A stretch of DNA of 64,000 nt, from the NCBI GenBank assembly GCA_000708835.1, contig DF236966.1, positions 248,001 through 312,000 on the forward strand, in the 5' to 3' direction. Below the pieces are notes generated by a model. That model was not told the origin of the DNA, searched no databases, and worked only from the letters and a program-made list of their open reading frames with translations. Positions 12,501-46,900 of this stretch are shown piece by piece. Made by a program: the position numbers and the translations under genes. Position 1 is the first letter of the stretch. The number at the start of each line of letters is the position of its first letter. This DNA comes from Klebsormidium nitens (lineage: Eukaryota > Plantae > Klebsormidiophyceae).

Positions 12501-15500
12501 GCATTTGGCATCGTGCTGTTGGAACTCATCACGGGGAGCCCCCCGCTCGACGAGACGCGCAGCGAGAGCCAGCAGCACATCATCGCATGGGTGAGTTCGG
12601 GCTCCCAACTTGTAGCTCTCCTCCGGTGCAAGAAAGGGTTTCGAAACTCTTCTGTGAAACGGTGTGGCGAAAGGATTTTAGGGAGAGTTTGTTTCAATAT
12701 TTGAGACTCTTTAGGGAGAGTTTGTTTCAAATATTCGAGACTCTGAGAGCCACCGTCTAAGTGGTGAGCGGGTCTTCAAACTCGAATCCCTGACGTCATT
12801 CTCGGTCGTGTCTCGAGCAATCCAGGAATCGCGCTGTGCTCGCATCATTAGATCGCGGTCCACTACGGTAATCCAGAACAGATGTGAGAGACACTGGGCG
12901 ATGTCAAATCCTCGACGGCCGATTCTACGAGTAGCCCCTACGGAATCTGATACACAAGCCAGCCTGAGAAAGCGGCAAGCCGTTTGCTCATCAGTCGCTC
13001 CATCAGTCCCTGCGCAACCCATCACAACGCTCGCCCTTGTCGACTGCAGGCAAAGCCCCACCTGGCCAACCGCGAGACGCTGACCGAGATCGTGGACCCG
13101 AAGCTCGGTAACAGAGCGCCTCTGGTAGAGCTTTACCAGGTAAGGCCATCCGAGCCGCATTGAAAAGCGCGAAGAAAGTGCTCAGGAATGTTAGAGAGCG
13201 TTCGACAGAGCGTGCAAAATGTTCGTGAAGCGTCGAGATCCGCTGCGGAAGTGCCTGCCTTGTGTGGTGGCGCGTTTATCGGAATTGGAAGTGTTTTCGA
13301 GGGTAGTCCTGTACTAAAGCGTTTGCTCCACGATGATTCTGCTCGCCTTCATGAAGCTGGAGAAAGGTGATCTCCCCCAACGGTTCTCACTCTGATTCCG
13401 GGCCGTCCAGGATCGGCATCTGATATGAATGTATTTTGCTGTGGCCTTTCTTGCGAAGAGGAAACCCCTTCCATTGCGCAAATTTAGTGCGACCAAAGGT
13501 CCCTAGTCAGAAAATGAGCACGTCTCGCTCTGACTAGAATGCCGTCTCGAGTAGATCATTGCACCACCTCAGTTTCCGCCACGAAGTCCTGCTGCAATCT
13601 GCTTTCGTTCTGGCTTTTTTGCCCGCCACTCAGCTGTTCTCCCGACATTCCGCCGTGACCCAATTCCGCTCCCCGCAGGTTGCTGCCGTCATCTCCATGT
13701 GCATCCAGCCCGATACTCGTCTGGGACACTCCTCGACCGTAGTTAAGCCTTTGCCTAAGATTCCGCTGGATTTCGATTCCGGCCCGGCATTCCGCCCTGA
13801 CCCAATTCCGCCCTCCCCAGGTCGCCGCCGTCATCTCCATGTGCATCCAGCCCGACGAGACCGTCCGCCCGCCCATGTCCACCGTCGTGCAAATGCTCGC
13901 GCCGCTGTCCGAAGCCCCTGACCCCGACGCGCCTTCGGAGTCCGGCCGGCCGGAATCCGGCTGGAGCGGGTCGAGCGGAACCGGGACGGACCGAGGGGCC
14001 GAGAGCAGCGGAAGCTTCCGGTCCAGGGGGTTCGGGAGAGGGACGGACTTTGGCTCTGGGAGGGGGGGTGGGCCGTTCCCGCCGGGAGGGGGGGGTCCGT
14101 TTCCCCCAGGCGCCGGGGGGGGTGTCGTAAGGCCGCTCATTATGACGCGGCCGGCGGGATATCAGGAATATGTGACGCCAGAAAACGCGGAGGGGCTGCA
14201 TCCGGTGCATATGTCGCCCGAAATAAGGGTGAGTCACGGGGAGTACTTAGTAGAAAGAGGGGCGGCGGAAGCTGCTTGTCGCTTTCTTATTCCTTTGCCA
14301 GTGCCAGCTTGTGTTTGCAGGCTTTTCCTGCGTAGACTTGGCCGGAAGCGGCGAACCCGTGTGTTGGTCTATTCTTGGAGTACCGGATCTCTTGTGAATC
14401 TTTCGCAGGCTGGTGTCAATCTGGTGCTAAAATTCCCCGGCAGCCTGATGTAAAGCTACATTCTCTTTTTTTGGGCAGCCTGCGGGCCGTCCGACGAACC
14501 CGTGGAGCGTCCGCATGCCGGAATACTGTCCTAATGCAAATATTGGACCTCTTTTGCGCTGGTTTGAGGCCGTTTTCCTTTCGTATAGAAGTGTCATTTT
14601 CTTTTCTCGGCAGCCTGCGGACCGTTCAACAAACCTGTGGAGCGTCCGCATGTTGGACTATTGGACCCTTGCAAATCACTGGAGTTCGTGTGGATCTCTT
14701 GAGCTTACGTAGATTCTGATCTTCAATTTCTCGGCAGCCTGCGGACCGTTCAACGAACCTGTGGAGCGTCCGCATGCCCGCGCGCCGAATCGATGCAAAT
14801 TTCGAAGGCTCGTGGACCTCTTTTGCGCTGGTGTGTGAAGCCGCATTTCATATGAACCGTTGATTTTTCCTCGGCAGCCTGCGGACCGTCCGACGAATCT
14901 GTGGAGCGTCCGCATGCCCGAGTACCGCATCCCGGTGGAGGTGCTGGAGCAGGTGGCGCGCTCGCGTGATGCGCGCGCGGAGAAGGAGAAGGAGCCCTGG
15001 TTCCGGAGAGAGAGGAAGGGGAAGCCGCGACCGCCGTCCAACAGCAGCAGCGAGAGCTCAAGTGAGCGCGAAAAGCACGTGCATCTAGAAGGGTTTGTTT
15101 GTCAATATTGACAAAACGAGAATGAAGGAACACCAGCGAGAATGAAAATGATTTCCCGAAACCATTCTGAGCGGCACGAATTTGAAATCACGTTTGGAGA
15201 GTGCCCACTTCTGCCTCTTGATAGGAAGGCGGCGTCGAAGGCGTGGCTGTTGTCAGAGGAGCAGCATTGAGAGCCTTACGTTAAGCAGGAAATGTTCACG
15301 ATGTTTCCCAATGCAATAGTATATTCAAAAGTATCTTGGAACAATGGTGCTCTTGAGTTTTGAGTTTGATAAAACAGAGGCCACGAAAAGCGAAGAGTAG
15401 TTTGTCTCCTTCTGCTCGTCCTAATCGAGAACTACTCTTCGAAACGAACATGAATTTAGAAGGGGCCACCTTCCCCGTTCTGGATCGGGCGTGCGAAAAT

Positions 15501-23594: not shown

Positions 23595-24431
23595 AGGGGA
23601 ACTTGATTTGGATTGCGTGCGATCTTGCTGGGTATTACCTAAGCAAAAGCAGCCAGAGCTGCTATCAACTACGTGATCATGCCTGAAACATTTTAGGTAG
23701 GCTTTTTCAATGCAAGAATACATCGAGCACACCGTTTGAGCACAGGACCGCTGGTTCCTTTGGGTCTATCAATGGAATGTCCTGATATTCGCTACCGTCT
23801 GTAGGGCTCAATCTGAAGGAACGAATCTGTTTCACTCGGTCGTATGGGTTGTCGCCCATGAAGTTGCAGATTGCACACCTTTAACTGAAGGTCCGCCCAG
23901 GGTCTAGGGCCTGCATGGACCTGCGTTGGGGCCCTTGGCGGCTCAAGTGCAAATCATACTCGTGTTCGGCGTTTGAAAAGATGCTCAATGATGAGGTCTC
24001 CCGGGTTCACAAGGCTTTTAAGCATAAGCATGTGTTGTTGGTATGTTACTGATATTGACTGGAGCGTGCAATCCCATTCGATGTCGTTTCAATGGTGTTG
24101 CATGCAAAATGCTAAAAAGTGGGGGGCCAATATGCCGCAACACTTGAATATGCATGGCGGTTGAGAAATGGCCCATTGCAAAGCATCAACTTCGTTTATT
24201 ATTCATTGTAGCAACAGGGTTCGATTCCTGTGATTTTTCACATGGGCGCGCATGTAGCTCAAGCGTACATATCAGATCAATACTACAACTAGAATGTCCT
24301 CCCCCTTGGAAGTTTTGCGATGAAGGATTTAGTACGGGGTTAAGGATGTCCCGATTTCGCAGTGGGGAATTTGCTGGGGGTAGTAGGGGGGTTAGTAGCT
24401 CAAGTTTCGATCTTGGTCAATGCGGTCAACC

Positions 24432-26175
24432 GGTAAGGGTTTCGGCCAATAGGAGCACGAATAAAAATGCCTTAAGTACCGTTTAATTTGGCATGCCATT
24501 TTCTTGCTGTTCTGTGTGCGCCCTGACTGCGCGCGAGCGTACGCGTTATTGAAAAAGGCGAAGCCATCGTATTGGTGTCGTGCAAGGCCGCCGTACGACG
24601 TCTGAAAGTATATGGCGACCGTCTGCCTGGCACCTTCCCTTGCAAGTCCGCCCTTTCACCCTTATAAGTTTGGCGAATCTGTGCGCGAGGGGAATGTGGG
24701 GAACACGCAATTCCCGGAGGTGCACATAGGGCGTTTAAAAGTTGGTGTACGGCATCGGCAACCTTAACCATCCGATGGGACGCCTGATATATCGGCTTTG
24801 CAGCTGGCACTAGATTCTGGTACAGCGGGTTTCGGACCGTCTTGTCGTATTGGGCGCTCAAAGCAGGTCGGCCGCCTGTCGCAGGTCATGCGATTGGGAT
24901 TCGCACGTGTGTCAAAAAGTCGCAGGCCGTCGATCGGTTTCTTTTCAATTATCAGCGGGAACGGCAGTCCCCTGGGTAAGCTCCGGTTGAGTCAGTGTCA
25001 AGAATTGAGGTGGGTCTGTCCCACGTGGCTGGCGGCACAAAGCGCATCAAAGCCACCCGACCGTAAGATATTAATACTGTTTTAGACTTCTATATCGAAC
25101 GGCTGAGATCAATGTATGGCATGCCGAGTGCAGTACCGCGTGCTGCCAATCTAGTTGGAACATGTCATGTTAATGAAAATGGCCTCCCTAACCGGGAGGC
25201 ATTTTCGGGATTTATAGTCTGGGTTTATCTGTCTGAGTTGGTGTGGTATAGTGGTGGCATTTTCCCGGATTTTTTCCTACCATTCGTAACGCCAGTCTTN
25301 NNNNNNNNNNNNNNNNNNNNNNNNNNNNNNNNNNNNNNNNNNNNNNNNNNNNNNNNNNNNNNNNNNNNNNNNNNNNNNNNNNNNNNNNNNNNNNNNNNNN
25401 NNNNNNNNNNNNNNNNNNNNNNNNNNNNNNNNNNNNNNNNNNNNNNNNNNNNNNNNNNNNNNNNNNNNNNNNNNNNNNNNNNNNNNNNNNNNNNNNNNNN
25501 NNNNNNNNNNNNNNNNNNNNNNNNNNNNNNNNNNNNNNNNNNNNNNNNNNNNNNNNNNNNNNNNNNNNNNNNNNNNNNNNNNNNNNNNNNNNNNNNNNNN
25601 NNNNNNNNNNNNNNNNNNNNNNNNNNNNNNNNNNNNNNNNNNNNNNNNNNNNNNNNNNNNNNNNNNNNNNNNNNNNNNNNNNNNNNNNNNNNNNNNNNNN
25701 NNNNNNNNNNNNNNNNNNNNNNNNNNNNNNNNNNNNNNNNNNNNNNNNNNNNNNNNNNNNNNNNNNNNNNNNNNNNNNNNNNNNNNNNNNNNNNNNNNNN
25801 NNNNNNNNNNNNNNNNNNNNNNNNNNNNNNNNNNNNNNNNNNNNNNNNNNNNNNNNNNNNNNNNNNNNNNNNNNNNNNNNNNNNNNNNNCTTTCCTCCGG
25901 GTAGTCTGGGTTTATGTGTCTGAGTTGTGGCCTCGTGGGTGCGGCAGGGTTTGGGGGTTAGAGTGGTTCAGAGTAGGTTAGAGTGCGTTATAGTAGGTTT
26001 GAGGATACATGCATAGTAGGTATTAGGGTTTCCCCGGACAATCATTGTTGCCAGTGGACGGTTTGGATCAAGTGGAAGATGAAGCGACGGTGCGCGGTCT
26101 TCGAGGTCAATGCTCGATGGTGCCACGTTGGCAGGCGGTAAGGGTTTAGCCAATAGGATCACGAATAAAATAGCT
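24432..26175. repeat. Repeat-containing intergenic region around an N gap, possibly a transposon relic
   Basis: CGGTAAGGGTTT(C/A)GCCAATAGGA(G/T)CACGAATAAAA-like motif at ~24431 and ~26136; TAGTCTGGGTTTAT(C/G)TGTCTGAGTTG at ~25216 and ~25902. No transposase or RT ORF recognised. Confidence 0.45.
25300..25889. other. Assembly gap (590 N)
   Basis: Run of N. Confidence 1.
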
Positions 26176-26838: not shown

Positions 26839-29696
26839 ATGGTGGTCATTGAGCTGCGCATGCAGAATCACAGCATCCCTTGGGAACATGTGCTCCCTGA
26901 TGTGGACCCCAGGAGCCTCACCGCTGGACGTGCAAAGGCCTTGCTGCAGCAAAAGCTGTGCATCTCTTCTAGGGGTATGGAGCTCCTGCTGGGGGGTTGG
27001 CAGCCGGTTCAGGAAGACCAACGCGTCCAAGATTGTTATGCAAGCTATTATCAAGCTGTCGAACTGGATAATGGGAGGGACCGCACCACATATAGTTCCT
27101 TCCCGCATGACTCTGCTGAGGTTGCGTTCGATGTGGACACAGGGCGCCTGTTCTATCATGCGCACAAAAGGCCTGCAGAAAAGAAGCTGAAGGATGAAGA
27201 GGAGCTTGCTGCCGTGTATGTCCTGGATAAGCTGGTGCTTCATGTGAAGGTAGGTTGAGATGTGCAGACCCTTCGAAAAGCACCAGTTGAGCATATTCTG
27301 ACAATGCTAGCAAGAGGTTTGAGCCAGCGGTCACATCATATTTTCAACCATTCATGTAGCCACTGTGCTTGTCACAGGACGCCAGGATAAGGTTTGATTT
27401 TATGCTGCATACGCCAAGAGTTTTGTACTGAACCAAGTCACCATCATTAAATGCGTCTGTACAAGAGCAAGCTCGATGAAGGCTTTTCTTGAGCATTCTG
27501 TCAGACTAAGCAGTCACATCATGCAGACTTGGCAGATATTTGAGGCATTTTGGAGCAGCAGACCTCGTTTATTTGGTGCTACAAACAGAAAAGTTGACTG
27601 TGGAAGGCCACTTTGGTGTTCTTGGTCTCTTTGAGAATAACAGGAATATTCTTCGTCATCTATTTGCAATTTCTGGAAGTGCTCAAAGATTCAGGTGAGA
27701 AAATGCATCAGAAGGCAACTACGTATTAGAGTGGATGCTGTGAACCTCAGACTAGAGCCTGCCCGATAGGACCTTCATTTTATCTCTCAAAAACCTTCTG
27801 ACTATTCGTGCATAGCTACTTTACGTCTTGATTGCAATGCCAGAATGTGAGATCTAGCTTTGTGACATCCAGATGCCACAACATTGTTAGATGGAGGCCT
27901 CAACTTTGCTCTCCTGTAAAAACTCTCCTGCTCAGGAGGCTGATGCCATCAGTGAAAGCAGGAACTCCGGTCTATACTACGTGCTTGTCAGAAAGTTTAT
28001 TGGTCAGACGTTGCTATGAGTTGAGCGAAGGTGTCTCAGTCTAGAAAGGGAAGCCTTTTTCAGACTGTGCTATTCATTTGGGAAGAGTCGCTATGGTCTC
28101 AATCTGCACAGACTGTTTACGTGGGGAAAGTGTACCTCAAAACATCTTGGTACAAGGGCAAAGCCTTGGGATGAGAGCTCTTAAGAAGCATGTTGACCCT
28201 CAATGTGACTAGTATAACACAACCCGGAAGGCAGAGGTGATAACTATGACATTGTGGCTCCAAGGGTAGCACAGAGCCTTCTACAAGTTTCATTAAACTG
28301 TTCAGGGGTGCAGTTGCGATTGCAAGTCATGACCTTATAGCATAGATTCATCACAAGATTCCCTGAAACTTTCGTATTCAAATCTCTCTCAAAACTTTGA
28401 GGCTACTTTGAGGATGCACTGAGTATCTGACTCTAAGTTCCCTCCTCTTGCAGACAACCCAGGCACGTCTCCCTTCTCAAAACCTGCCCTGGGGAAGAAC
28501 CAGAGGAACAGTTATCGCCTTCGTCCTCGGCCCCACTCGTGACGTCACGCGCGTTGTAACCTTGACTACAATCAACAAAAGCACGACCCTCGAGGCGCTC
28601 CAGTCGTTGATCTTTCAAGAGACGGGAATTGAGTCAAAAGAGCAGCATCTGCGGGTCATTGGTGGCACAAGTTACATCCTCGAAACTAAAGACTCTGATC
28701 GGAAGTACTGCTGGCAGCAGGGAATCAAGTCGGGCTCGTTTCTTACGGTCGAGAAGAGATGGGACGGACAAATCCAGATTTTTTGCAAGGGGCTCACCGG
28801 AAGGACGATCACTTTGAACTGTTACGGCAATGACTTGGTGGAGGACGTGAAGAGACAGATTGAACAACTGGAAGGCATCACGTCGTCAGCGCAGCGCCTC
28901 ATTCATGCGGGACAGCAGCTGCAGGATGGACTCACTCTGACAGACTGCAAAGTTCAACGGGAGGCCACTCTTCACCTTGTGCTGAGACTGGGGGGCGGCA
29001 TGTTCCACGCCTCGAGTAAGTCATCCTACCTAATCGAGGTCTTCGTTTGACGGTTGAGTCAGTGGTGCCAAGCAATCAGCAATCAGCACAATTCTTCGAT
29101 TTGCTTTGCATCTATCCAGCCCTGACTGTCGGCATCTGGCCGAGAGCTATGTCTTTTCATTGCAGCCATGGTATGGCCTAGAACAGGAGTGAACGGCGAG
29201 AGGGACGCCGCAAGTAACCGAGGAAACATGATATCGTTCTCGAAGAATCTACTGGAGCTCCGTGATTTCCGCCAGAGCTGAAAGAGCCGCTGTGGTTCTT
29301 GCCGGACGGTCGGTTTCTACCTCCTGCAGTGGGGTGCGTCGATTTGGACCAGCGGAAGATAAAGCTTTTTCAACACTTTCGATATTTATTCATACTCGTA
29401 AAAGCCATTCGCAAGATATGCTCTTGGAACCTATTGCAGGCGGCAGGATGGACTTCGAGCAGCTGCGCGCTCTGACGACGAACCTCAAGGTCAAGATGGT
29501 CCGCAAGGGTGTCTGCATCAACGAACGGACGGTCCGCATCGACGGCACAACGGAGGCCCGTCGGTTGAGCGAGGCGCTTGCGGGGCCGCACAGTGCCACG
29601 GACAAAGAGGTGCAAGAACTGGAGGCAAAGAAACGGGGCCTGGAGGAAGCGATCGCCGCGCTGAAACAGAACAGGGGGGCAACAGCAGCGGCATAA
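26839..29696 (+). CDS. Multi-ubiquitin-like-domain protein with C-terminal extension and coiled coil
   Basis: Exons ~26839-27249, 28454-29015, 29440-29696 in matching phases. The last UBL is clearly ubiquitin-like (IQIFCKGLTGRTITL...QRLIHAGQQLQDGLTLTDCKVQREATLHLVLRLGGG) and splices into MFHASSGRMDF. The two upstream units are divergent. The start codon is uncertain. Confidence 0.75.
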
Positions 29697-33800: not shown

Positions 33801-36661
33801 TGGGGGTGCTGCTCCGCCACGAACCCCCGTGGGTTCTCCCCCCGCAGCGTGATGCGCAGCGGCCCCGCGCGGCTGCGGTTGCTCATGATGCCGTGGTGCG
33901 CAAACGGCAGGTGGGACGGGTCCATCAGGTTCTCCACCAGAAAATCGTACCTGCGAGGGGTGGAACAAATTGCCGCCACGTTGGAGAAAGCTGACGTCAC
34001 GAAAGTACTGGCGTCTCATCGGTGTAATGCTGCAGAGGTGGTCGGGAAACGGGTGCATCGACTCCGACAGCTTCCTGATGGAAGCGAACATGCAGGGCGA
34101 CGCAGTCTTGATGACACTAGCTGTGCTCAGAATTATACGTACCGAGTTTCTCCACGAAAGCCTGACTACTATGTTGACGCTTTTGCTGATGAAACAGCTC
34201 CGCCTTCCAACAAAGTCGTACGCAAATTTACCAAACCAGATCACCGTCCTTTACTGCGGCTACTCATTTCCCCCCGGTGGATAAATCTAAGATCATGGTG
34301 CCATCAGCTGTGGCGACCAGCATCGGGAGGTTCAGAGCGTAGCATTACTACCGGTCACTCCTAGCTGCGCTGCAGCTCTATGTTTTTACGACCCAAGAAC
34401 CAACCTGCTCTTCTCGCGAGTCAAAGAGGGATGCTTACCAAAGGGAGAGACAGGCTTTCACAAACTCACCCGTAAGGGAAGTCTCGGGCGACCAGGTCCT
34501 TGCTAAACGACGGGTCGTCCATTTCCGGCACGTGCGGGGGGGGTCGTTTCAAGGCGGTGTCGGCGGTAGCTGGATCCAGCCACACCCACACAAGGCCGTT
34601 TTGAAGTAGAGTGGGGAAGGGCTGCGCACATGCCCGGGGGGACGAGTGGGCCTGCAGAGCATCGGGTTAGGGTCAGCAACGGCGGGTTAAGGTCGTTGTC
34701 GAACGAAAGCGGCTTCTCGAGCTGATCCGAAAGCAGTCACGTGCTTTTTCAGAGCAGTGTGGCTCTTCATTTCGGTGCATGATTTGAACCAGACTGAATC
34801 CCGGACTTACGGTCTAACTGCCGGAATGGCAAATACTCAACTCCTCAGCGTTTCTGGTCCGATGTTGTGGCACCCATCTGTGATAGAGCAGGTGGCAAAG
34901 ACTTCCGCTGCCAACCTCAACATCAGGGCAGGCGTGTCAGTAATGTTTTCCTACCCCTCCAGGACTCTGGATGACCGAAACCTTGACTAGCCAAAACCCT
35001 AAAGACCAAAATTCTTGGTCTTCTAAACATTCTTGGTAACAAAGCACACACGCGCTCACTGCAGCTTGCGGCCCCTCCTTCTCTGCCTGGGGGATGGACT
35101 GGCAGCGCGCGTCCCCGTCAAAGGACCACCCATGGTAGCTACACTGGAGCCGACCCGCCTCATCGATCCGACCTGAGGCACAGGAACATAATTATTTGAC
35201 AAGGCTTTCTCCATCCTAATTGTATGCTGCTGCACTGTCAGAAGTTTGCTGTGGGAATGTTGGTGGAAGGGAATGAAAGGTGTAGGGATGTCAGAGCTCG
35301 CTAGCAGGTGAGAAAGACAACGTTCCTGGCTGTACACCGTACTTCTGATGACCAAGGCGGACTGTATGTGATGTGGGTGCGGCAATTGCATTTGGCCGAT
35401 TCGGAGGGTATATTACAAGGTCCGAGGGCACAATGTCTTGAGTGGCCCAAAGCGTTAATCTTCCTCAGGGTGACTGCTCTCGTTGGCCTCCTTTTGGCAG
35501 GGCCAGAAAGGAAATTTTGCCCCAGAAAGCCAGAATCAAAATCCCTTTCCAGGGCCTTTTTAAACGGGCTCCTAGACAACTACAACCATTTTGTTCTGGA
35601 ATCGACTTTAGACCTAGGTGTTTTCCGAGGACGACAGAAGAGAATGTTCCTGCAACTGACGGTCTCCATATGCAGAAAAAGCTCTTACCACTTTGCTGCT
35701 GACTGCCCTCGAGACCATCACTCTTTACAACATCGGAGTTGGGGCAGAAGTGGGGGTGAAGGGGGGGGGGGGGAGGGGTCAAAAGCAGTGCGGCAACATA
35801 TAACTTAGTCCCATATGCATGGCACAAGGAATGCAATCAGGTAATTTAGAAGCATCCACTGACCACTACTGCAAACCCCATGCCTTTGAAGGTTCACCAT
35901 CGACCTTCACCAACCACAGGAGCAGTGCCTAAGATATGATATAGACCAAAAGTGAATCAGAAAAAGAACAACTCACCTTCGCTGAGTGGCGCCAGCCTGT
36001 GCGGGCACATATCCAAAAATGCGCGCCAGCCTCCCGGCTGCCCCTTTTCCCTTTTGTTCCGGTCCCACCATAGAACTAGAGGCTTCCCCAAAATCGTCAC
36101 TGCAAGGGGCAGCTCCTTCCGCACGTCCCGCTCCACTGCGATCGGGTACCAATTCTCCGCCCACTGGAAATCGTGTCCACCAGGTGCTGATTGGTTGGCA
36201 TCCTTCTGAGCTGGCTCGCTGCCCGGCAGGCTTTCCCCCTCTTCTTCTCTTGATAGGGTGATTGTTCCGTCCCCCTGCAAACCCCGCGCCTGCTCCTGGA
36301 ACGCTTCGACGCCGACGCTGCTGCTGCGGCATTGCTGGGTCTTTCTTGGAGATGTTTGGGACCATTTCAATTTGATTGCATCACCACTAGAAAGTTCTTT
36401 CTTGTTGTTAGGATCTTTACTTTCTCCTGAAAGTCTGCATGTGGAAACAGAAAAGCAGCTCCGACGATGCTGCTGAGAGTAGGATGATTGCCTGCTCAGA
36501 CTTTTGCTTATGCGCAGCCGATGGGAAGGTGGTGGGAAAGGGGTGATCACGCTGGATGGAAGCACACGGCAGTGTCTCTGCGTCGACCAGCCAGAAAACT
36601 TTCTGCAGGATCCGAGCGCCTGCACTTGAGCCATTGCTGCTTTAACGAATTCAGGAGCCAA
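30827..36661 (-). CDS. Chloroplast Rieske-type oxygenase of the pheophorbide a oxygenase family (PAO / ACD1-like-PTC52 / TIC55)
   Basis: Exons 36661-35977 (WYPIA...CPHRLAPLSEG), 35172-35060 (CSYHGW), 34651-34470, ~33950-33738 (ENLMDPSHLPFAHH), ~33075-32871, 32401-32329, 31787-31664 (DRYIVAFRRWL), 31088-30827 (HTKHCSSC plus two TMs). ENLMDP resembles ACD1-like/PTC52 more than PAO, but this is not decisive. Confidence 0.9.
33128..33178 (-). repeat. Intronic copy of the acceptor plus exon start of the PAO-family gene
   Basis: TCTTGCCGGAACCACCCCTCGGCGGCATCCTGCG versus the genuine TCTTGCCGGAACCACCCTTGGCGGCATCCTGCG at ~33046-33078. Confidence 0.85.
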
Positions 36662-37259
36662 CGAACAGGCTTGTTGGCAACAAAATCACTTGCGCCTCTA
36701 TCCTACTCCTTTCTCTTTGCTGTACATGTGCGGGCGAGGGGGAGGCAAGCTCACCTAGACAACAATACGTTTGTATGATGCTCAGCTACGCTAGCCTCTA
36801 GGCGCTAGCCATATGCATGCTGCCATGCTGGCGATTCGGATGTTCACGATCGAACGCGCGCGCATCCGCGATCAGCTTTTGAATCTGGGGGGTTCAGGGT
36901 TTCAACTTTATAACCGCATATGTACGTACGTGGTATACGTATTGAGATTCCTCGGACGCGGCCGCGGGTGCGGTCACGGTCGCGGCTGCCAGTCTCGTAC
37001 AGGCTGCGCGGTAGCAACAACTCAAGGAGGACACGAGCAAAGTGAACAAACACTTCCAAGTAGATTTCGAGGCAAGAGAAGCTAAGCTTGGCGCTTGCGC
37101 GCTTTCCTCTCAGCTGCTGTGGCCAGATTGTGTAGCAATATCTCTTACTGTTCTGAACCCGTTCTGAAGGGATCAACCATTGCTTCAAACAACACCGGGT
37201 CTGACACGTACGCTTGGCTCTCAACCTTCGCGGGAGCGACTTATGCGCAGGAGTCCACG

Positions 37260-38267
37260 ATGGCCTTCAGCAGGTCTCCAAGATCCACCCTTGACAAGCT
37301 CTTCGTGTTCTGTTTCCTCCTAAGCATGTTCTGCAGCGTAGCGCACGCATCTGAACTGCTCTTCAAGCGTCAAGAGAAATGCTTCGTTTCTGCAGTGGCA
37401 AGTCGCTTCGAGGGAGTTGGCAATCTGAGCCTTCCAGAACTTGACATGATCAACGCCTATTTTCGTACAAATACGACGTTCCGGAAGTTCCTTCTGCCAG
37501 ACTACCCTCCGCTGCAATTGATCAAGTGCGACGTGTTCCTTGTTCAAATGGGGGGTTTGTTCAGCTTCTACACCGCGGATCATCCGGGGGCGTGCCAAGA
37601 AGCGCCTGAAAAGCAGCTGAAACCTATGGCAGAACATTCTGCAGGAGAGAAGTTCTGGAAGTTTGAGATTAGAAATTGGCTGTGCTTCTGGCCTCTCTCA
37701 CTGGCACTCGTAGCTAACGGCATCCTTTTCATTCACTACCATACTAGGATGACGACAGCCTTGAAAGGGCAGTACGAACCCCGATGGGGAACGGTTGAGA
37801 GGGACGTTAACATCGGCGTGGTCATTTCAATGGGCTGCTTCTTCTATGGTACTTTGGGTCTAGCTGGCTATTGGGCAAATGTAGATCTTCTGCAAGAGCT
37901 TCACCTGCCAGATCCAGCTACCAATATCAATCCCCTCCTCCGGTCGAGCAATTCCACATTGGACCTCCATCGCTGCACCGTCTTAGGGGGGCCTTCCACT
38001 AAGAGTGCTCTCTTCGACTTCTATATTGGCATGCCCGAAAACATCTGCTCACAACTGCTAGCCGCGGGGGTCATTTATGCAGACTACGTTGCCAAGGGTC
38101 CAGACGATGCATTTGGCGGGGGTGGCCTTGAGCGCTTTGGTTTGCTAATGGCGCGGTGGTTCTTGTCATTCTCAACGGTGTCCGGCTCAATCCTTTTCTT
38201 GTCCGAGAAAGCGTTCCATCTGTCTTGCGTCTTCGGTCCAAAATGGATTCTGAAAATTACTAAGTAA
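37260..38267 (+). CDS. Uncharacterised multi-pass membrane protein, paralog A (intronless, ~335 aa)
   Basis: Long open ORF sharing NAYxRxNTTFRxFLLP, PPLQLIKCxV, FYTADHPG, LPDPA, LHRC and FYxGMPE with paralogs B and C. Confidence 0.85.
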   Translation: MAFSRSPRSTLDKLFVFCFLLSMFCSVAHASELLFKRQEKCFVSAVASRFEGVGNLSLPELDMINAYFRTNTTFRKFLLPDYPPLQLIKCDVFLVQMGGLFSFYTADHPGACQEAPEKQLKPMAEHSAGEKFWKFEIRNWLCFWPLSLALVANGILFIHYHTRMTTALKGQYEPRWGTVERDVNIGVVISMGCFFYGTLGLAGYWANVDLLQELHLPDPATNINPLLRSSNSTLDLHRCTVLGGPSTKSALFDFYIGMPENICSQLLAAGVIYADYVAKGPDDAFGGGGLERFGLLMARWFLSFSTVSGSILFLSEKAFHLSCVFGPKWILKITK

Positions 38268-39462
38268 GGAATAAGAGGATGGGAGAACGAGCTTAAAGTG
38301 GAACAGGTTAACAACAGGACACTGGTTTGTTACCGTCTTACTGCTTAAATATCGAAGAGACGTATCAGGTGCTATTGCAAGTTACATTTGTATGTACGGA
38401 AGGGACTTACAGTTGTCCTTGGAAAAGTCGTATAGCTTTAGTCACTAGGTACTTACGTATCACGAAGTACCTATCGGAGTGAGGACGTTGTCGGTAAATA
38501 TTGACTGTTGTAAATCCGCTTGATACGGTTTTCACACTCAACGCAACTCGACTCAGAATTATCTGCAATATGGACTCAGATGAGCGTCCTTGGGTTGAGC
38601 AACTCAATTCAAACGGCGTTGCCCAGGCTCATAAGAGCTATTTATAGGACAAAAGTAGTGCTTGTCTGAGGCACTCTCCGCCGCTCTGCTTACTAAGCCT
38701 TATAAGGCGACCCCAACTTATCTGATCGGGACATTTGCTTTACAACCAGAACTGTGCGCGGAAGCCAGCACTGCATCTATTGTCCCTGGCGAAAAGCCTG
38801 CTAAGTCCGTTCATGCTGGCGCGCGGCCGCCTCTACTCCTGCCACCATTGCGTCTCAATCACTTGACTTTGGGTCGTCACGAAACGGTTTCGAGATAGGT
38901 ACATTGCAGAGTGTTGTGATTTTGGGGTGCATCATCGAAAAAATCGTCCACCAAACTTAGGCATCACAAACGGATTGTCTATTTCATCAACTAGTGCGTC
39001 CTCGATAAGAATAACAGCACATCATCAGACTGGACTTGCATCATGGCATGAAAGACAAGTTGGCGCCCTTGTCGCGACCTGCACCTAAGGAGCCGAGATG
39101 CCTTATATAAAGGTCGTCTAAGTAGTTACATCAGTCATTGCGCATTGGGCATTTCCATTCTGTGAAGCAAGGCGGACGCGCTGCGGCAAACGGATCATCA
39201 GAAACGCGGTGATTCGTCGGCTCATGCGGCGCTTGAAGTCGCGCGGGGCCGACAAGACATCACCAAATTGCCTCGTAATATGCATGGACGCGGCTGCGCA
39301 TGCGGTCCAAATTTTCTCATGGGACGTGGAGCCGAGGCCGGCCGCGGCTCGTGGGACCGCGCCAATCGGGCGCGCCAAATACGACGTCAGCCCCGAACCG
39401 TGCATTAAGCTCTCACAAAACTGAAGCACGTAAGAGCAAAACAGCGTAGCTCTTTGGCCACC

Positions 39463-40560
39463 ATGGAAGCAAGCAAGCGCCTCTGCACGTCAGGAATCCT
39501 CGTCTTGAGCAAGTTTACAAGCATTTTGCTATTTTGCTGCACCATCATTTTCATTGCAGAGGGAGCTGCAGCCCAGGGCGCGGCAGCGGGAGAAGGAGAA
39601 ACCACACAAGTCAGGGGCGCCTTAGAAATGATTGGCAACGTAATCTTGCCTGACCCTGACGTCATAAACGCTTATCTTAGGGACAACACAACCTTCAGGA
39701 ACTTCCTGCTGCCATCAAACCCGCCGCTGCAGCTTATCAAGTGTGAGGTTTACCTCCTCCAGATAGGGGGTTTGTTCACATTCTACACCGCAGACCATCC
39801 AGGAGGGTGTGAACAGGCTCCTAGAATGGCCGTTATTCCAGAGAGCACTTATTATGCCAAGCACCCTTGGCAGTTTAAGTTGAGGAACCGGTTGTGTTCC
39901 TGGCAGAGCATGCTGGCAATTGCGGGGATACACGCTTTCGTAATTCTTTGCCTCCGTCGACTCGCAGAGACCAGAGAGGAAGTCAAGGCGGGATTCTGGG
40001 AAGTTTTTGAGCGGGTAGACGACGTTTTGCTGAATTGCGCAGCCGCTTGCGAAATGCTTGTCATCATAATAGTCATTATCGGCAGCTTCTCCTTAGGCCT
40101 CGTGCTGAACATTACTTGGGCCGAAGAGTCGCGCGTGCATTCGTTACCCCTGCCTGACCCCGCAACTAGCGTCAACCCTCTGTTGCATTCGAGCAACATA
40201 AGCCTCAGCCTCCACCGCTGCGACGTCCCTATGCCGGCTAGATTACAGAGCCAGAAAAACGACGGCTTCCTGTTCCAGTTCTACACAGGGATGCCAGAAG
40301 CTCTGTGCCCTCAGCTCTTAGCGGCACGTGCCATCTATCCAGGTTATGTATCCGAAGGACCAGAGGATTATTATGGGGGACGTGAGCTGGCAATGACACT
40401 TTTGTGCGTGATGCGCTTCTTTCTGTATCTAGTCACAGTTTCGGGCCTTTGGGCTGTCTTGTACGATGTACCCTACTTGCTCCTGGTCATTAGCGTAGCT
40501 TGTTACAAGGAGTACAGGAGCGGGGTTCGGAGCATGCTCAAGGTGGGGTTGCTTGGCTGA
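39463..40560 (+). CDS. Uncharacterised multi-pass membrane protein, paralog B (intronless, ~365 aa)
   Basis: Long open ORF with the family motifs; ends GVRSMLKVGLLG* like paralog C. Confidence 0.88.
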   Translation: MEASKRLCTSGILVLSKFTSILLFCCTIIFIAEGAAAQGAAAGEGETTQVRGALEMIGNVILPDPDVINAYLRDNTTFRNFLLPSNPPLQLIKCEVYLLQIGGLFTFYTADHPGGCEQAPRMAVIPESTYYAKHPWQFKLRNRLCSWQSMLAIAGIHAFVILCLRRLAETREEVKAGFWEVFERVDDVLLNCAAACEMLVIIIVIIGSFSLGLVLNITWAEESRVHSLPLPDPATSVNPLLHSSNISLSLHRCDVPMPARLQSQKNDGFLFQFYTGMPEALCPQLLAARAIYPGYVSEGPEDYYGGRELAMTLLCVMRFFLYLVTVSGLWAVLYDVPYLLLVISVACYKEYRSGVRSMLKVGLLG

Positions 40561-41284
40561 AATTCACTGTATTCTCGACCTTCGTTAAAAAGGTGTACCG
40601 GAAAGCTTACACGAGCTTATACTTGGTCAAAAGATGTGCGTAAGCTCGCCTGTCTGACTGTGGCTTTCAAGAACTTTGATCTACACGTTCAGATGTACAA
40701 GGAGCCAGTAGTCTGTTATCTTTGACTTTAATTTGATGATCTGATCAGTGTGAAAACCAGCTTGGACGGCTCATTCATTTAGAGTATATGCAACCGAGCG
40801 GACCGCGTCTGTGCAGACAAATCTGCCTCTTTGGTCAAAGACGTACACGTCCAGATTGCGTGCATCATGCCCGCATCCCCGCAAGTTCGCAGAAATCTGG
40901 ACATGTGTATGTCGTTGTGTGATATACCAGCTTAACGGTACGCCAGGTTCCTTGACGAAACTTATCACGCCTCCTTCGACCAATCGATTTGGACGCTGCC
41001 ATCTTGTGCCATATAGCATGCAGCAATTCGGATAGATGCATAAGATACTGGAGTGTAAGCCAGAAACACGGCCTGAAAGTTCTTTGGAAGAATAACATCA
41101 GAGAAGTAGATGCATTTGCTATGGATTGTTGAACTCAAATGCAGGTCGAGTTTTGGCTGAATAAAAGACGGCGAATGCGGTCCGCGGAATTCTAAGAAGT
41201 CAGAGCTTCCGGATTTCAGGTCGCAGTATGATCAGCAGGCGTTCAACTTGTGTTATAAGGCTCCCGTTGTCCGTTGAATAAGTG

Positions 41285-41480
41285 CGTCCCAATGATTCTC
41301 AGCCTTTTGCCTTCTTCGACTTCTTCCCCTCTTTTCTATCCTTGTCTTTTCGATTCCCTGGGCCGAGCTACCGACGCCTTTGCTTCTAAGCCGGTGCTAA
41401 GCCGTTGGCCGGCCGTTTGTCTCTACACTAAGGTAACTGCTCTTAGGCAGCTTGCCCCCCTTCGACAAAGCCTCCTCGAA
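41285..41480 (-). pseudogene. Duplicated fragment of the NAT10 terminal exon, including the stop-codon region
   Basis: Colinear high similarity to 43978-44161; for example GCCTTCTTCGACTTCTTCCCCTCTTTTCTATCCTTGTCTTTTCG is identical. The copy carries a short internal duplication. Confidence 0.88.
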
Positions 41481-41728
41481 GGGTGGCTGAGCGGTTAGAG
41501 CGGCCGCGGCCTATCAGATTGGCGACCCGCGCGCGTCAGCTCAGCACCAGCGCCGGCCAACGGCGGCCGCAGCACGCCGCGTCCCCAAGAAACCTCTGCG
41601 GTTTGAGAATCCCGGAAGCGGCGGGGTCCGGCCGCGGCTCGAGAACAAGCTCTTCACGTTACACGGAGCTTGAAAGGAATCAGACTGAGATAAAACGAAG
41701 CTGCAAACAGCGTAGCTCGTCGGCCGCC

Positions 41729-42823
41729 ATGAAGTCGAGCAAGCGTCTTTCCCCGTCAGAACTCCTGATTTTCAGCAACCTTACACGCCTTCTGCTCTTT
41801 TGCTGCACCATCGTCTATATCGCAGATGGAGTTGCAGCGCAGGGCACGGCAAAGGGTCAAGGCAAAGCCGTGCAAGTCAAAGGCTCCTTGGAGATGATTG
41901 GCAACGTAACCTTGCCTGACCCTGACGTCATAAACGCTTATGTGAGGGACAATACAACCTTCAGGAACTTCCTGCTGCCATCATACCCGCCGCTGCAGCT
42001 CATCAAGTGCGAGGTTTACCTCCTCCAGATGGGGGTTTTGTTCAACTTCTACACCGCAGACCATCCGGGGGGGTGTGAACAGGCCCCTCCCATGGCCGTT
42101 TTGCCGGAGAGCACCTACTCTGGCTGGAATCACTTTTGGTATTATAGTCTGAGGAACTGGTCGTGCTGCTGGCAAACTCTGCTGGCGCTTGTGGGAGTCC
42201 ACCTTGTTGTGATCCTTTCCCTTTTTCTGTTCGCGGACGGCAGAAGGGAAGTGGAGACCCTATTCGCGCAATTTCCGTCAGACATGCGACTTGAGCGGGA
42301 AACCGGCGAGGACGCTGTGCTGGCCCGCGCGTTTGCTTACACGGCGATTGCCTCTACTATACTCGTCCTCTGCAGCCTTTACGCTGGTCTTGCGCTAGCC
42401 ATTATCTGGTGCGATCTTGCCGTTTTACACGCACTTCCCCTGCCAGATCCGGCAGCCAGCATCAATCCTCTGTTACGGGCGAGCAGCATAAGCCTCAGCC
42501 TCCACCGTTGCGTCGTCCCGATGCCGGGATTGTATGACGAAGGCTTCCTCTTCCACTTCTACACCGGCATGCCAGAAGCCCTCTGTCCTCAGCTCTTAGC
42601 GGCACGTGCTATCTATCCAGACTACGTTTCACACGGCCCAAGCGACGAGGACGGGGGAATACTGAAATTTTGGGGGCGGTGGGCCTTCTCATTTGTCACG
42701 CTCTCGAGCCTGGCTGCTCTAGTGTGGGACGTAACCTGTTTGCTGCTTGTAGTGATTATAGCTTGTTACAAGAGGTATAAGAACGGGGTTCGGAGCATGC
42801 TCAAGGTGGGGTTGCTTGGCTGA
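41729..42823 (+). CDS. Uncharacterised multi-pass membrane protein, paralog C (intronless, ~364 aa)
   Basis: Long open ORF with the family motifs. The sequence just before the ATG (AAACAGCGTAGCTC...GGCC.CCATG) and the last ~40 nt match paralog B. Confidence 0.88.
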   Translation: MKSSKRLSPSELLIFSNLTRLLLFCCTIVYIADGVAAQGTAKGQGKAVQVKGSLEMIGNVTLPDPDVINAYVRDNTTFRNFLLPSYPPLQLIKCEVYLLQMGVLFNFYTADHPGGCEQAPPMAVLPESTYSGWNHFWYYSLRNWSCCWQTLLALVGVHLVVILSLFLFADGRREVETLFAQFPSDMRLERETGEDAVLARAFAYTAIASTILVLCSLYAGLALAIIWCDLAVLHALPLPDPAASINPLLRASSISLSLHRCVVPMPGLYDEGFLFHFYTGMPEALCPQLLAARAIYPDYVSHGPSDEDGGILKFWGRWAFSFVTLSSLAALVWDVTCLLLVVIIACYKRYKNGVRSMLKVGLLG

Positions 42824-43990
42824 AAGTCCCATATGTGCTCAACCCTTCGTGGAGAGGACCCAGTCGGAGGCAATTGAAAGCATTCGAGCTCGAGGTCGGT
42901 AAAAGACGTGCTTAGCCCGTTCTGAATCTTGCATGAGAGAAAGTTACTCTCCATGTGCTAACTGCACAAGGCGCCATATATAACATATGTTCCAACGTTA
43001 CATGTATCGCCAACGTCATCATGTTGGTGCGCTTGTTTGTTTGGGAGCTTGTGCTTGCCGATGAGCAATCTCACGTATACAACATGGGACCTCGGCCCAG
43101 CCGTTCTGACTCTGCCGTTGTTTAATTGGCAGGGACGAAAGCGTTGCTCTGACTTCAGATGTCTTAGCTAGTATGGTCGGCTTGCACTGAAGCGTTCTAT
43201 CCATTTCGAGACTTGAAATGAATGGGCACCGCAGGCAACCTGATATCAAGTCATTCAAAGCATGGAGTCGGGAAGACCGGTGTGTCTCGCATAATCAGCT
43301 CGGGCTGTCCAAAAGGGCTTCATGAACAAACGGACTTCCAGGTCATGCATGCTGCATGCTGTGATCGTCACTGGCGGGCTCTTGGTACGATTACGTAAAC
43401 GTAAAGGACCGCTCATCGGATGTAGCGAACGATGTCGCAACTGGAATGAGATCCGTATCGGCGTATGAATGCAAACACGTTGGCAATCTAGGCACGTGCA
43501 ATTTCAGTGTTCGCACACATTTTTGCCCGTCGAACGTACAGGAGATCCGACCGGTTTGATTGGTAGCTAGATTGGAGTCTGGTCTGCCAATTGGCTATCA
43601 AGTTTCCGAGTTCTATCCAAGTGCGTGCACCACGTAGACGTTGGCAACGTACACGCAGCAACTTGGCTGTTAGAGAACTGGATTGCACGGAAAGAACTGG
43701 CCGGAGCTGGAGACTAACGTAAGAATCAGCGACAGGGCAGTACAACGAAGCAGGTGCAGACTTGCAGCGAAAGCAATGCCTTAAACCTGTGGCAACCGGG
43801 TCGAGCTCGTCGACTCAGATATGGAGGAAGCCGGTAGCGGCCAGAAAAATCTGCCCGCAGAATGCGTAAGAAGACGACTTTTGGCATACATATGGAGGAC
43901 GCGCAGCAAGAAGTGCAGCAGCCGCATCCTTGGCTATAGACTCTCCTTTCTTGATAAGAAGACTGTCACACTAATTTCGTCCCAATCTTC

Positions 43991-46900
43991 TCAGCCCTTT
44001 GCCTTCTTCGACTTCTTCCCCTCTTTTCTATCCTTGTCTTTTCGCTTCCCTTCCCGAGCATCCGACGCCTTCGCTTCTAAGCCGTTGGCGGGCCCTTTAC
44101 TCTTTACACTAAGGTAACCGCTTTTAGGCAGCTTGCCCCCCTTAGACAGAGCCTCCTCAAATTCGGCGTCGCCCCGGATCGCATACCGCGACAAGTCCTC
44201 GGGTTGAAGCAGCGCCTCCACCTTTTCTCTCATCGCAGCCTGCACCAAAGACGACCGGTAAGTGAGCAGAAGAGTCTTTTTCTTTACAATCTCTGTCTCT
44301 CCACTTTCTAGCCGTATTTGAAGACAGGGACATTGCTGAGTAACACAGGCTCGAATTCCAGAAGAGAAAGCCCTAAACACATCGTAGGTGTCGAAGCTGC
44401 AACGAGGGGCAATGGTCAAGCAAAGCAGTTCTGTCCAAGACTCCTAGCTGCCCAACGCCAATTCACTCCTGGAATGGCTTCCGCCTGACAAACCGGATCT
44501 TAGCCGTTCAACCCGGGCTCTCTTCTTCACATGCCAACGCTTCCCACCGCACCAGGTCAAGAGGCAAGGCCGAAATGGGAAAGCTTTCGTTGCTTTCTGC
44601 TTCAATCCATAACAACGTCAACCTCGTACCTCCACGTCCGCAGCCCCCTCCTCCAGGTCCTCGTCGACCGTCCGATCGTGCGGCGTCATCTTCACCTCTC
44701 TGACACGTGGCAGCGCGGCCTCGATCTCACGTGCCGCCGCGCCGTGCAAGAGGCCGTGCAGCTTGCGTATCGTCTTGTTGAACAGGGCCAGGATCTGGCT
44801 GGAGGGGAGCTTCAGGTAGGCCTGGAAGAGCGACACGTGTCAGCATAATCGGCAAAGAGTCCTCGGTCAGGAAATCTTGCTGAGTACGCGTTGTTTGCGC
44901 CTTCACCCCTTGAAGGGCTTCGTTTGAATATTCTGTTTGGATGACTAACAAAACTGGCGCTTGACATACACTCGTCGTTTCTCTGCTCTACTAATGCCTT
45001 GAAACGTTGTCAATTTCTTAAAAACAACATTGTACAGAACGGATTTACATTTACCTCGACGTCCGTCAGGTCCTGGTGCTGGAGTCCGAGCGAGAGGAGG
45101 ATGGCGGCCTGGCCGTAGGAGAGCGTCGCAGGCAGCTTTTCTAGGAAGTAGAGGCGGGAGAGGGACGGCACCAAATCCAAAATCTGCGGCAGGGAGAACG
45201 CACGGAGTCAGTGAGGGTTCAACCCATAGTCATGAAAGTCCGCCGGACGGTTGTCAAAGTAACAGTGAAGCAAGGAGTGGGTTCAAAGAAGAACGTTAGA
45301 CGAATTGCAACTGCTACCGGTCCATTGACAACCGGCGAATGATCCGAAGACGACTGATCCGAAGAATTACAGATGTCGCAGAGGGCTTTGCTTTGTCAGA
45401 ACCGTACATGTGCTTGACATGACGGTGTAGCCACGAAGCTTGCCGTTTATGCGGAAGAAGAAAAAGTGGGCCAAAACCTCCTGCTAGCCCTGCACTCCTC
45501 TTTAAATCAGCTCGGAAACTTCGATCAAGGACTGCTAGCGATTGTTCCCTTCGAAGAGTCGCTACAACTTTATAAATCTCCTAGAATTCTTGTAGTAGAC
45601 AATATAGCTCTCCGAGAGCACCTTCACATGCAAGAAACACTGCATTGGATCCAATCTTTTCTCTGACCCCTTACCAGATGGTAGTCGACCAGGTTCCTGG
45701 AATACGAGTCCAGCCGCTTCATATCGTATGGCGAGAAGGTGGTGTCTCCGGCCCCCACGATGCCCTGCCCGGAAGGCCCCGCCTGGGCCTCCTGTTCGCT
45801 GAAGCTGATCTTGGGGTCAACGATGGTCAAAGCGAGCGCGGGGGGAAAGGAGCGGAAGTTGAAGCCCAGGAGCGACAGAAAGCGCCGCTTGAAGTCTGCA
45901 TGATGACGTCGTGAAGCGTCAGTGTTTGATGTCAGATCGGAGAACAGCAGACGTCGTCAGGGTCGAAACAATGGCATCCAAGAGAGCGCGGACAAATTGC
46001 TGCAAAATGGAAGTAAGTGCCGAGCAGAGCACGAGACCGCGGGAGCCCAAAACCCTGCAGAAAAGACTGGGCAGGGACTTTCCAAGCGAGAGTAGAAAGC
46101 GGATGCAGAAGCAAAAGCCTCCTTTCTTTGCCGGAAGCGGAAACGGGGCGCACCTTGGAAGAAGGGCTGCACCCAGTTGGCGCCCCCTTCAGAGAGGCTC
46201 TCGACCTCGTCCGTCTGCAGCGCCTTGAGCATGATGCACGTGTGCTCGCCCGTGATGTCATTCTGTCCGCACAGAAAAGCGAACGACAGATGTGAGCGGA
46301 GGTCTTAAGATAGCAAAACGGCATCCGCAGCCCATGCTGCAGATTCCAATCTACTCTCATCAAAAAGGATGTCGCTTCAAAGCGGTGCTAAGGCCCTGCT
46401 AAACCGCTATCGAACCGCCTTGACTACGGAGCCCCTTCTCAGCCCAAAAGAAAAGCCAGGATTCTCAAGGAATTACGGCAAAGTGCCCTGCTCACCGGCG
46501 TTTGCCACAGGTAGACGTGCGGCCTGCTTCTGCAATGCTAAACCCGCTTTTCTCTTTGGACAAATACAGGCACCGACAGGACCGCTGACGCAAAGAAGCC
46601 CACAGATAGAACCAACAAACATCCGCTCACCGGCGTTTGCCGCAGGTAGACGGGCATCATGCCGAGCCGCTTCCAGAAGTTGAACAGCTGCTGCGTGAGG
46701 CCGTATGAAACGCCCACATAGTGCAGCTTCTCCGGCCGCCGCTCCGCCAAGCTCACCAGCAGCGGGGGGAGGTCCGCCCGCGGCTTTACCTGCTCATCTT
46801 GCAGCGACGCAACCTGCAGAGGTCGACGGAATTCGTGGGTTGGAGGCAATTGCGCGGGTTAGAATGGCTGCTTTGAGGATGCGTTTTACGTCCAGGCTCA

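Follow-up and report, generated by a model that had tools for sequence, protein, structure and literature searches.

Three tandem, single-exon genes on the forward strand of a 64,000-nucleotide stretch of the Klebsormidium nitens genome (GenBank assembly GCA_000708835.1, contig DF236966.1, positions 248,001 to 312,000; this whole stretch is hereafter called the window, and coordinates count from its first letter) encode membrane proteins of a family that we call double-LPDP. The explanation that we favor, with slightly more than even confidence, is that the three proteins, p1, p2 and p3, are Klebsormidium-restricted glycoproteins of the secretory pathway that act through their ectodomains, whether in binding at the cell surface, in sensing or as linkers between wall and membrane. 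The genes look functional, given their ratio of nonsynonymous to synonymous substitution (dN/dS), a syntenic orthologue and probable RNA that lies on the open reading frames (ORFs) but not on the spacers. The family appears to be undescribed and, among the data that we searched, we could find it only in Klebsormidium and close relatives.

Three paralogous genes in tandem

All three ORFs run intact from ATG to stop and carry every feature of the family:

37260-38267, + strand: p1, single-exon gene, 335 amino acids (aa), subfamily A of the double-LPDP family
39463-40560, + strand: p2, single-exon gene, 365 aa
41729-42823, + strand: p3, single-exon gene, 364 aa, the protein chosen for AlphaFold2 modeling

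The p2 and p3 proteins are 59–62% identical to each other, and p1 shares 40–45% identity with either (tblastn E values from 1e-67 to 1e-134). The genes repeat with a period of about 2.2–2.3 kb, and since alignment at the DNA level is now confined to the coding parts and, for p2 and p3, about 24 nt of upstream sequence, the duplications are old. The GC content of the region (0.50–0.53) equals that of the rest of the window. ORFs of at least 200 aa number only 12 in the 64 kb, three of them being the trio, a scarcity that would fit intron-rich neighbors.

An earlier note on this DNA had described three intronless paralogs here, locally amplified. The frames are indeed complete without introns, paralogy is clear, probable RNA contigs run colinear with the genome, and tandem or single-ORF relatives recur at other loci.

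Paired two-cysteine domains

Each protein is built in the same order: an N-terminal hydrophobic segment (segment 1), domain 1 (D1), a transmembrane segment (TM), a loop, a second TM, domain 2 (D2) and a C-terminal TM region. Hydropathy places the two central TMs at residues ~145–170 and ~190–229, with further hydrophobic regions at the N and C termini, in agreement with where the earlier note had put them. The last hydrophobic segment is weak in p1 (Kyte–Doolittle peak of 1.38); in p2 and p3 it spans 35–40 residues, and the AlphaFold2 model of p3 draws it as one long helix.

Both domains start with L-P-[DE]-P, followed by an invariant Asn, a Cys in a beta-strand, an aromatic–Tyr pair and a second Cys, so that each domain has two invariant cysteines (in p3, C94 and C116 in D1 and C261 and C286 in D2). 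We define the family signature as two copies of L-P-[DE]-P...N...C...[FY]-Y...C about 160–175 residues apart with a TM hairpin between them, together with an N-terminal signal-like segment and a C-terminal TM. All of these elements are present in p1, p2 and p3, although the first copy in p1 reads LPEL. The two domains also resemble one another beyond the motif, with a BLASTP E value of 0.001 within p3 and, when family profiles of D1 and D2 are aligned by hhalign, an E value of 3.3e-5 at a probability of 72%. The internal duplication is genuine but weak. The parts of the three proteins map to the window as follows:

p1, + strand: signal-peptide-like N terminus ending in VAHA; D1 motif LPEL at 37431-37442; D2 motif LPDP at 37905-37916; conserved Cys codons starting at 37527, 37593, 37974 and 38046
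p2, + strand: LPDP of D1 at 39646-39657 and of D2 at 40150-40161; Cys codons starting at 39742, 39808, 40219 and 40306
41729-41842, + strand: p3 residues 1–38, with basic n-region, hydrophobic core of 12–15 residues and GVAA; probable cleavable signal peptide (from hydropathy and a heuristic)
41900-42103, + strand: p3 residues 58–125, the domain 1 core, with LPDP, helix, beta-hairpin, Cys94, Cys116 and an NTT sequon at N75
42167-42415, + strand: p3 residues 147–229, comprising TM1, a variable charged loop and TM2; modeled as a helical hairpin
42416-42628, + strand: p3 residues 230–300, the domain 2 core, with LPDP, helix, beta-hairpin, Cys261 and Cys286; homologous to domain 1
42656-42823, + strand: p3 residues 310–364, a long C-terminal hydrophobic helix (TM3 core at 328–346) and the basic tail YKRYKNGVRSMLKVGLLG

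AlphaFold2, supplied with an alignment of 35 family members, modeled p3 with a mean pLDDT of 78.6 and a pTM of 0.68. The domains are modeled with confidence (pLDDT of 93–97 for D1 and 89–96 for D2), each consisting of a helix and then a beta-hairpin, and the long helices fall at residues 148–180, 184–231 and 310–363. A complex prediction with three copies of residues 55–350 scored 0.00 with an uncertain fold, and it weighs neither way on self-association.

Predicted topology

Across the family, the longest uncharged run at the N terminus is mostly 10–16 residues long and starts within the first 20 residues, and it gives way to a polar c-region of small residues (for example, QQSEA/A, AHA/S and GVAA/Q). 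Because the run is so short and is followed by such a c-region, segment 1 reads as a cleavable signal peptide rather than as a 20-residue anchor. By our own heuristic on run length and c-region, signal-peptide cleavage is thus probable, and a cleaved protein would be left with three TM segments and an N terminus on the outside.

On average, D1 carries 2.1 N-glycosylation sequons and D2 carries 0.9, with almost none in the loop or tail; at the position of N75 in p3, within D1, the sequon is kept in 25 of the 35 members. Conversely, Lys and Arg together make up a fraction of 0.136 of the loop and 0.156 of the tail versus 0.076 of D1 and 0.056 of D2. From sequon placement and the positive-inside rule, D1 and D2 would lie outside the cell (or in a lumen), and the loop and tail would be cytosolic. 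The earlier note had pointed to AxA-type endings of segment 1 (VAHA, GAAA and GVAA), which are found in the trio, and had offered a signal peptide on a surface protein as one possible reading. Run lengths, c-regions, sequons and Lys/Arg content all favor that reading, as far as a heuristic can carry it.

Where conservation lies

Pairwise identity among the 35 members is 44% in the D1 core and 40% in the D2 core, as compared to 17% in TM1, 15% in TM2 (15–17% for each TM), 10% in the loop and 17% in the tail, and this ranking is unchanged within subfamilies A and B. The alignment has 11 invariant columns (L62, P63, N69, C94, Y108, C116, P120, L238, P239, C261 and C286 in p3), every one of them in D1 or D2, and none of the 35 members' TM helices contributes an invariant column. 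Helices that line a pore would be expected to be conserved; at 15–17% identity, these look instead like interchangeable anchors. Since selection has held the ectodomain cores and not the helices or cytosolic parts, the function probably lies outside the cell. And because those cores are the conserved part of the protein, not a diversifying one, we would expect a conserved extracellular partner.

Comparison with known families and folds

The trio had been proposed as an unrecognized family, with a confident match to a known family as the result that would overturn the idea. No such match came from Pfam, Protein Data Bank (PDB) profiles, Foldseek or VIA-align. In Pfam, none of the 35 members matched at E <= 0.01; at E <= 1, p1 and p3 had no match and p2 had just a chance match to a viral methyltransferase (E = 0.25). 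PHROGs gave no match. The sequence-profile search of the PDB returned designed helical proteins only, which we read as a composition artifact of the TM helices. The ESM Atlas offered no usable feature match for the whole protein or for D1, and its structure search gave TM-scores of at most 0.24. At E <= 0.001, Foldseek produced no match in either the PDB or BFVD. The highest VIA-align Z score, 6.0, belongs to generic helical matches, and D1 alone reached 2.4 at best.

The earlier note had likened the layout to that of innexin and pannexin large-pore channels and had suggested structural comparison with innexins, CALHM, LRRC8, claudins and tetraspanins. Neither these families nor the pannexins or connexins appear among the matches listed, that is, the best 50 of the Foldseek search and the best 50 of the exhaustive VIA-align search. 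The likeness to innexins, pannexins, LRRC8 and connexins consists of four hydrophobic segments, provided that segment 1 is uncleaved, and two extracellular regions with two conserved cysteines each in double-LPDP; connexins carry three per region. Large-pore channels, which assemble as rings of 6 to 11 subunits, have a cytosolic N-terminal helix that lines the pore, whereas the double-LPDP N terminus is signal-peptide-like; their extracellular loops are short and bridged to each other by disulfides, whereas each double-LPDP protein has a pair of folded domains, homologous to each other and some 70 residues long. The trio does not display the four-helix-bundle fold that those channels have in common, no sequence or fold similarity connects it to them in Pfam or among the structure matches listed, and the TM helices of double-LPDP are not conserved.

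Claudins (with PMP22) and tetraspanins offer another likeness, as small polytopic surface glycoproteins of multigene families whose disulfide-stabilized extracellular regions sit on a helical bundle. The outside regions of double-LPDP differ from theirs in being similar in size and homologous to each other. Claudins are marked by the signature W-GLW-C-C in the first extracellular loop and tetraspanins by CCG in a large second loop, paired with a small first loop. Both signatures are missing from the alignment of 35 members, and neither family is among the Pfam matches or the structure matches listed.

Range and history of the family

An exhaustive profile search with a hidden Markov model, covering 1.84 billion (1.84e9) cluster representatives, retrieved 45 relatives. 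All of those with names are K. nitens entries called 'hypothetical protein' (KFL_000580110, KFL_000740030, KFL_003620100, KFL_001920120, KFL_003300020, KFL_000390070 and KFL_001450010), so that the taxonomic range, which the earlier note had proposed to establish by profile search, is limited to this species as far as named relatives go. The remainder are proteins from JGI or from contigs assembled from public sequencing runs, and the three contig loci that we examined belong without exception to run SRR23617307, from one related alga. Four relatives came up in a word-index search, to which the 35-member profile added nothing beyond the name KFL_000740030. The exact p1, p2 and p3 sequences, from the chosen ATG starts, are absent from a collection of 15 billion proteins, and scans of IMG/VR viral contigs and JGI metagenome contigs with motifs of subfamilies A and B yielded no relatives. 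Nothing describing the family came from a literature search by K. nitens locus tags and by topic.

A maximum-likelihood tree of 35 rows, which includes every full-length match and leaves out fragments (P0008–P0012, P0014, P0028, P0030, P0032–P0034, P0039 and P0044), resolves three well-supported subfamilies, with the trio in subfamily A (support 100/100). Each subfamily holds pairs of a K. nitens protein and an assembled-contig protein, and the subfamilies therefore predate the split of the two species. Single-ORF copies stand in tandem elsewhere too, five at contig locus L002 and three at L004, and the K. nitens reference locus L003 (DF237007.1, 54351-77363) holds one broken copy and, after it, one that is intact. 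At L003, the gene model KFL_000580110 (9817-13013 of that locus; 471 aa, drawn with introns) appears to merge these two tandem copies; the first of them, probably broken or frameshifted, aligns only as three separate pieces, and the second lies intact at about 12036-12773.

Many subfamily B members (P0015–P0020, P0025–P0027, P0034 and copies at L002 and L004) share a conserved C-terminal peptide, approximately V-[YH]-[SN]-V-E-[ML]-Q-A-P-x-G-S-A-V-COOH. Often a Cys-rich run, located where the last TM reaches the cytosol, comes before it. The peptide and the Cys-rich run could represent a docking or sorting signal together with palmitoylation sites. All three window genes are missing the peptide.

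Selection and expression

By the NG86 method, dN/dS is 0.35 between p1 and its orthologue on contig L001 of run SRR23617307 and 0.39 between p2 and p3, values that denote purifying selection, though fairly relaxed. The L001 orthologue is 70% identical to p1 as protein and 80% as DNA. It adjoins the same Rieske gene as p1, with the same ubiquitin-like gene farther upstream.

Probable RNA contigs from three runs of one 2024 study (X5–X7) cover parts of all three ORFs, with leaders and trailers. These data are assembled contigs, not reads, and the RNA label of the runs was guessed automatically:

37078-37836 and 38058-38516 (span 37078-38516), + strand: probable RNA contigs over p1, with a 5' leader of at least 182 nt and a 3' trailer of at least 249 nt
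39441-39797, 40248-40432 and 40502-40747: probable RNA contigs over p2
41584-41786 and 42573-42798: probable RNA contigs over p3

In the same runs, contig depth is zero over the spacers at 38600-39400 and 40800-41400, and the contigs are colinear with the genome, containing no joints. This pattern is consistent with low-level, unspliced transcripts. Other runs of the same organism guessed to be RNA contain nearly no sampled words of the region, and trio expression may for that reason vary with conditions. Rfam gave no match in 36600-44000.

Several further matches were seen in the region. Within the spacer upstream of p3, a 58-nt segment (41420-41477) matches, with five differences, the interior of a 2,829-nt contig of run X7 with a depth of 245, and it also matches three contigs of run X9, from a related organism; in both cases, the sequence to either side of the match is unrelated. 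The segment is probably a piece of some repeat or highly expressed gene. Run X9 (DNA, from this second organism) also yields many short contigs, at depths of 45–240, that are 90–99% identical to the conserved parts of the trio, pointing to a high copy number of the family or to a mixed sample. In one X9 contig, 40561 is connected directly to 41287, with 725 nt of spacer missing.

Proposed function and alternative explanations

The sequence data directly show the ORFs and their paralogy, the internal duplication, the narrow range of the family, purifying selection, the pattern of conservation and the lack of known relatives. From these we infer signal-peptide cleavage, the topology given above, disulfides, glycans, a plasma-membrane location and, above all, a binding function. 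In the scheme that we propose, the signal peptide would direct the protein into the secretory pathway. The first ectodomain, D1 (about 70 residues, made of LPDP, a helix and a beta-hairpin), would contain its two invariant cysteines, probably as a disulfide, and usually an N-glycan. It would be held by TM1, from which a short, variable cytosolic hairpin loop would lead into TM2, and the homologous ectodomain D2 would be held between TM2 and TM3, leaving a short basic tail in the cytosol. The extracellular partner bound by the paired D1/D2 module would be a conserved one, most likely some other surface protein or a component of the cell wall or matrix, and the helices would serve as anchors and not as a pore.

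Several points weigh against this proposal. Signal-peptide cleavage depends on a heuristic, and an uncleaved peptide would make the protein a four-TM tetraspan; similarly, the C-terminal hydrophobic stretch of 35–40 residues could form two helices and thereby alter the topology. The location could be the endoplasmic reticulum, Golgi or vacuole instead of the plasma membrane. The C-terminal peptide of subfamily B (~VEMQAPAGSAV) hints at a cytosolic partner and hence at signaling or trafficking. Nothing ties the ectodomains to any ligand, no structural match hints at a binding activity (as the VIA-align result for D1 illustrates), and the support for expression consists of assembled contigs from runs that were guessed to be RNA.

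Among the alternatives, the one with the best claim is a signaling receptor, in which the ectodomains would sense a cue that the TM hairpin or C-terminal tail relays to a cytosolic partner, placing the essential step within the cell. We regard this as fairly unlikely. The conserved end of subfamily B proteins (for example, VYSVELQAPAGSAV and VHNVEMQAPAGSAV) speaks for it, as do the p2/p3 tail GVRSMLKVGLLG, which is also kept in P0012, a relative on contigs from public reads, and tandem expansion, which is common among receptor families. However, the proteins have no cytosolic domain: loop and tail are short, at about 31 and 20 residues on average, and poorly conserved across the family (identities of 10% and 17%). 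The tail motifs vary by subfamily, p1 has neither of them, and no recurrent neighbor such as a kinase accompanies the genes across the loci examined. Another alternative is that the trio are subunits of a new tetraspan channel of the large-pore type, with segment 1 retained as a TM0 and the subunits ringed around a pore. Such a channel would account for the four hydrophobic segments, the two outside loops with two invariant cysteines each and the internal duplication laid out as [hydrophobic segment–domain–TM] x 2, and AlphaFold2 does model the N-terminal segment as a helix (pLDDT of about 72–74). We nevertheless consider it quite improbable, because the TM helices, at 15–17% identity, are among the least conserved parts and have zero invariant residues, the N-terminal runs have signal-peptide length and cleavage-type c-regions, and the 'loops' are folded domains of 70–100 residues rather than short loops. 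Moreover, none of the 35 members matched a Pfam family at E <= 0.01, a result that takes in innexins, connexins, pannexin-like LRRC8, CALHM, claudins and tetraspanins, assuming that Pfam-A has them, and no such fold is among the best 50 Foldseek or best 50 VIA-align rows. The innexin/pannexin-like reading of the earlier note is not supported by the N terminus, by the contrast between helices and ectodomains or by the structure matches listed.

The remaining alternatives concern where the genes came from and whether they are genes at all. Intronless tandem genes in an intron-rich genome could signal acquisition from outside, whether through a giant virus, a transposon or horizontal transfer, for example as viral envelope or membrane proteins amplified after integration. 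We find this very improbable, and the horizontal acquisition raised by the earlier note found no support: two sets of motifs brought up no relative in IMG/VR or in JGI metagenome contigs, BFVD and PHROGs offer no structural or profile match, and GC content is like that of the surroundings. The trio also sits among ordinary host genes whose synteny is kept in a second species, with three subfamilies already common to the two. As for the lack of introns, a founder gene that arose by retroposition and was then duplicated in tandem would fit the data; the subfamilies are so old that no poly(A) or target-site traces would be left. That the trio are decaying pseudogenes or chance reading frames is scarcely credible. 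The absence of the exact sequences from the 15-billion-protein collection, which means no public annotation with those starts, and the broken K. nitens copy at L003 are in keeping with decay, but three intact ORFs of 335–365 aa, dN/dS of 0.35–0.39, 11 ectodomain residues invariant in 35 members, confidently modeled domains and probable transcripts all speak against it.

Klebsormidium is a key reference for the adaptation of green algae to land. As matters stand, double-LPDP is a lineage-restricted orphan family, of a kind common in eukaryotic genomes. One can go further and imagine the paired LPDP ectodomains as a new extracellular fold, and the family as an invention specific to Klebsormidium for terrestrial filamentous life, an idea that we hold to be unlikely. 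On that reading, the proteins could be a new class of wall-to-membrane linker, molecules of cell-cell adhesion or recognition at cross walls or, less likely, a new pore-forming tetraspan, and their intronless tandem spread would reflect recent adaptive amplification. The prospect of innexin-like channels in a streptophyte alga was tempting and is now without support. For annotators, the reference genome labels family members merely 'hypothetical protein', and KFL_000580110 wrongly fuses two copies; the family definition supplies a double motif for diagnosis, a division into three subfamilies and a probable topology. For experimentalists, it offers a compact, confidently modeled ectodomain for expression and for wall-binding or ligand-binding assays.

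Other features of the window

A low-GC island at 24001-26000 (0.35 versus about 0.50 elsewhere) contains an ATG-initiated ORF of 289 aa at 25112-25981, which has no Pfam match and no exact match in the protein collection. Genes upstream of p1 include a ubiquitin-like gene at 28448-29050 and, on the - strand, a Rieske [2Fe-2S] gene at 35957-36661. Their order is kept in the SRR23617307 contig, where exon-sized blocks are 87–96% identical in DNA, and the Rieske gene carries the motif CPHRLAPLSEG, which we take to be PAO/Tic55-like.

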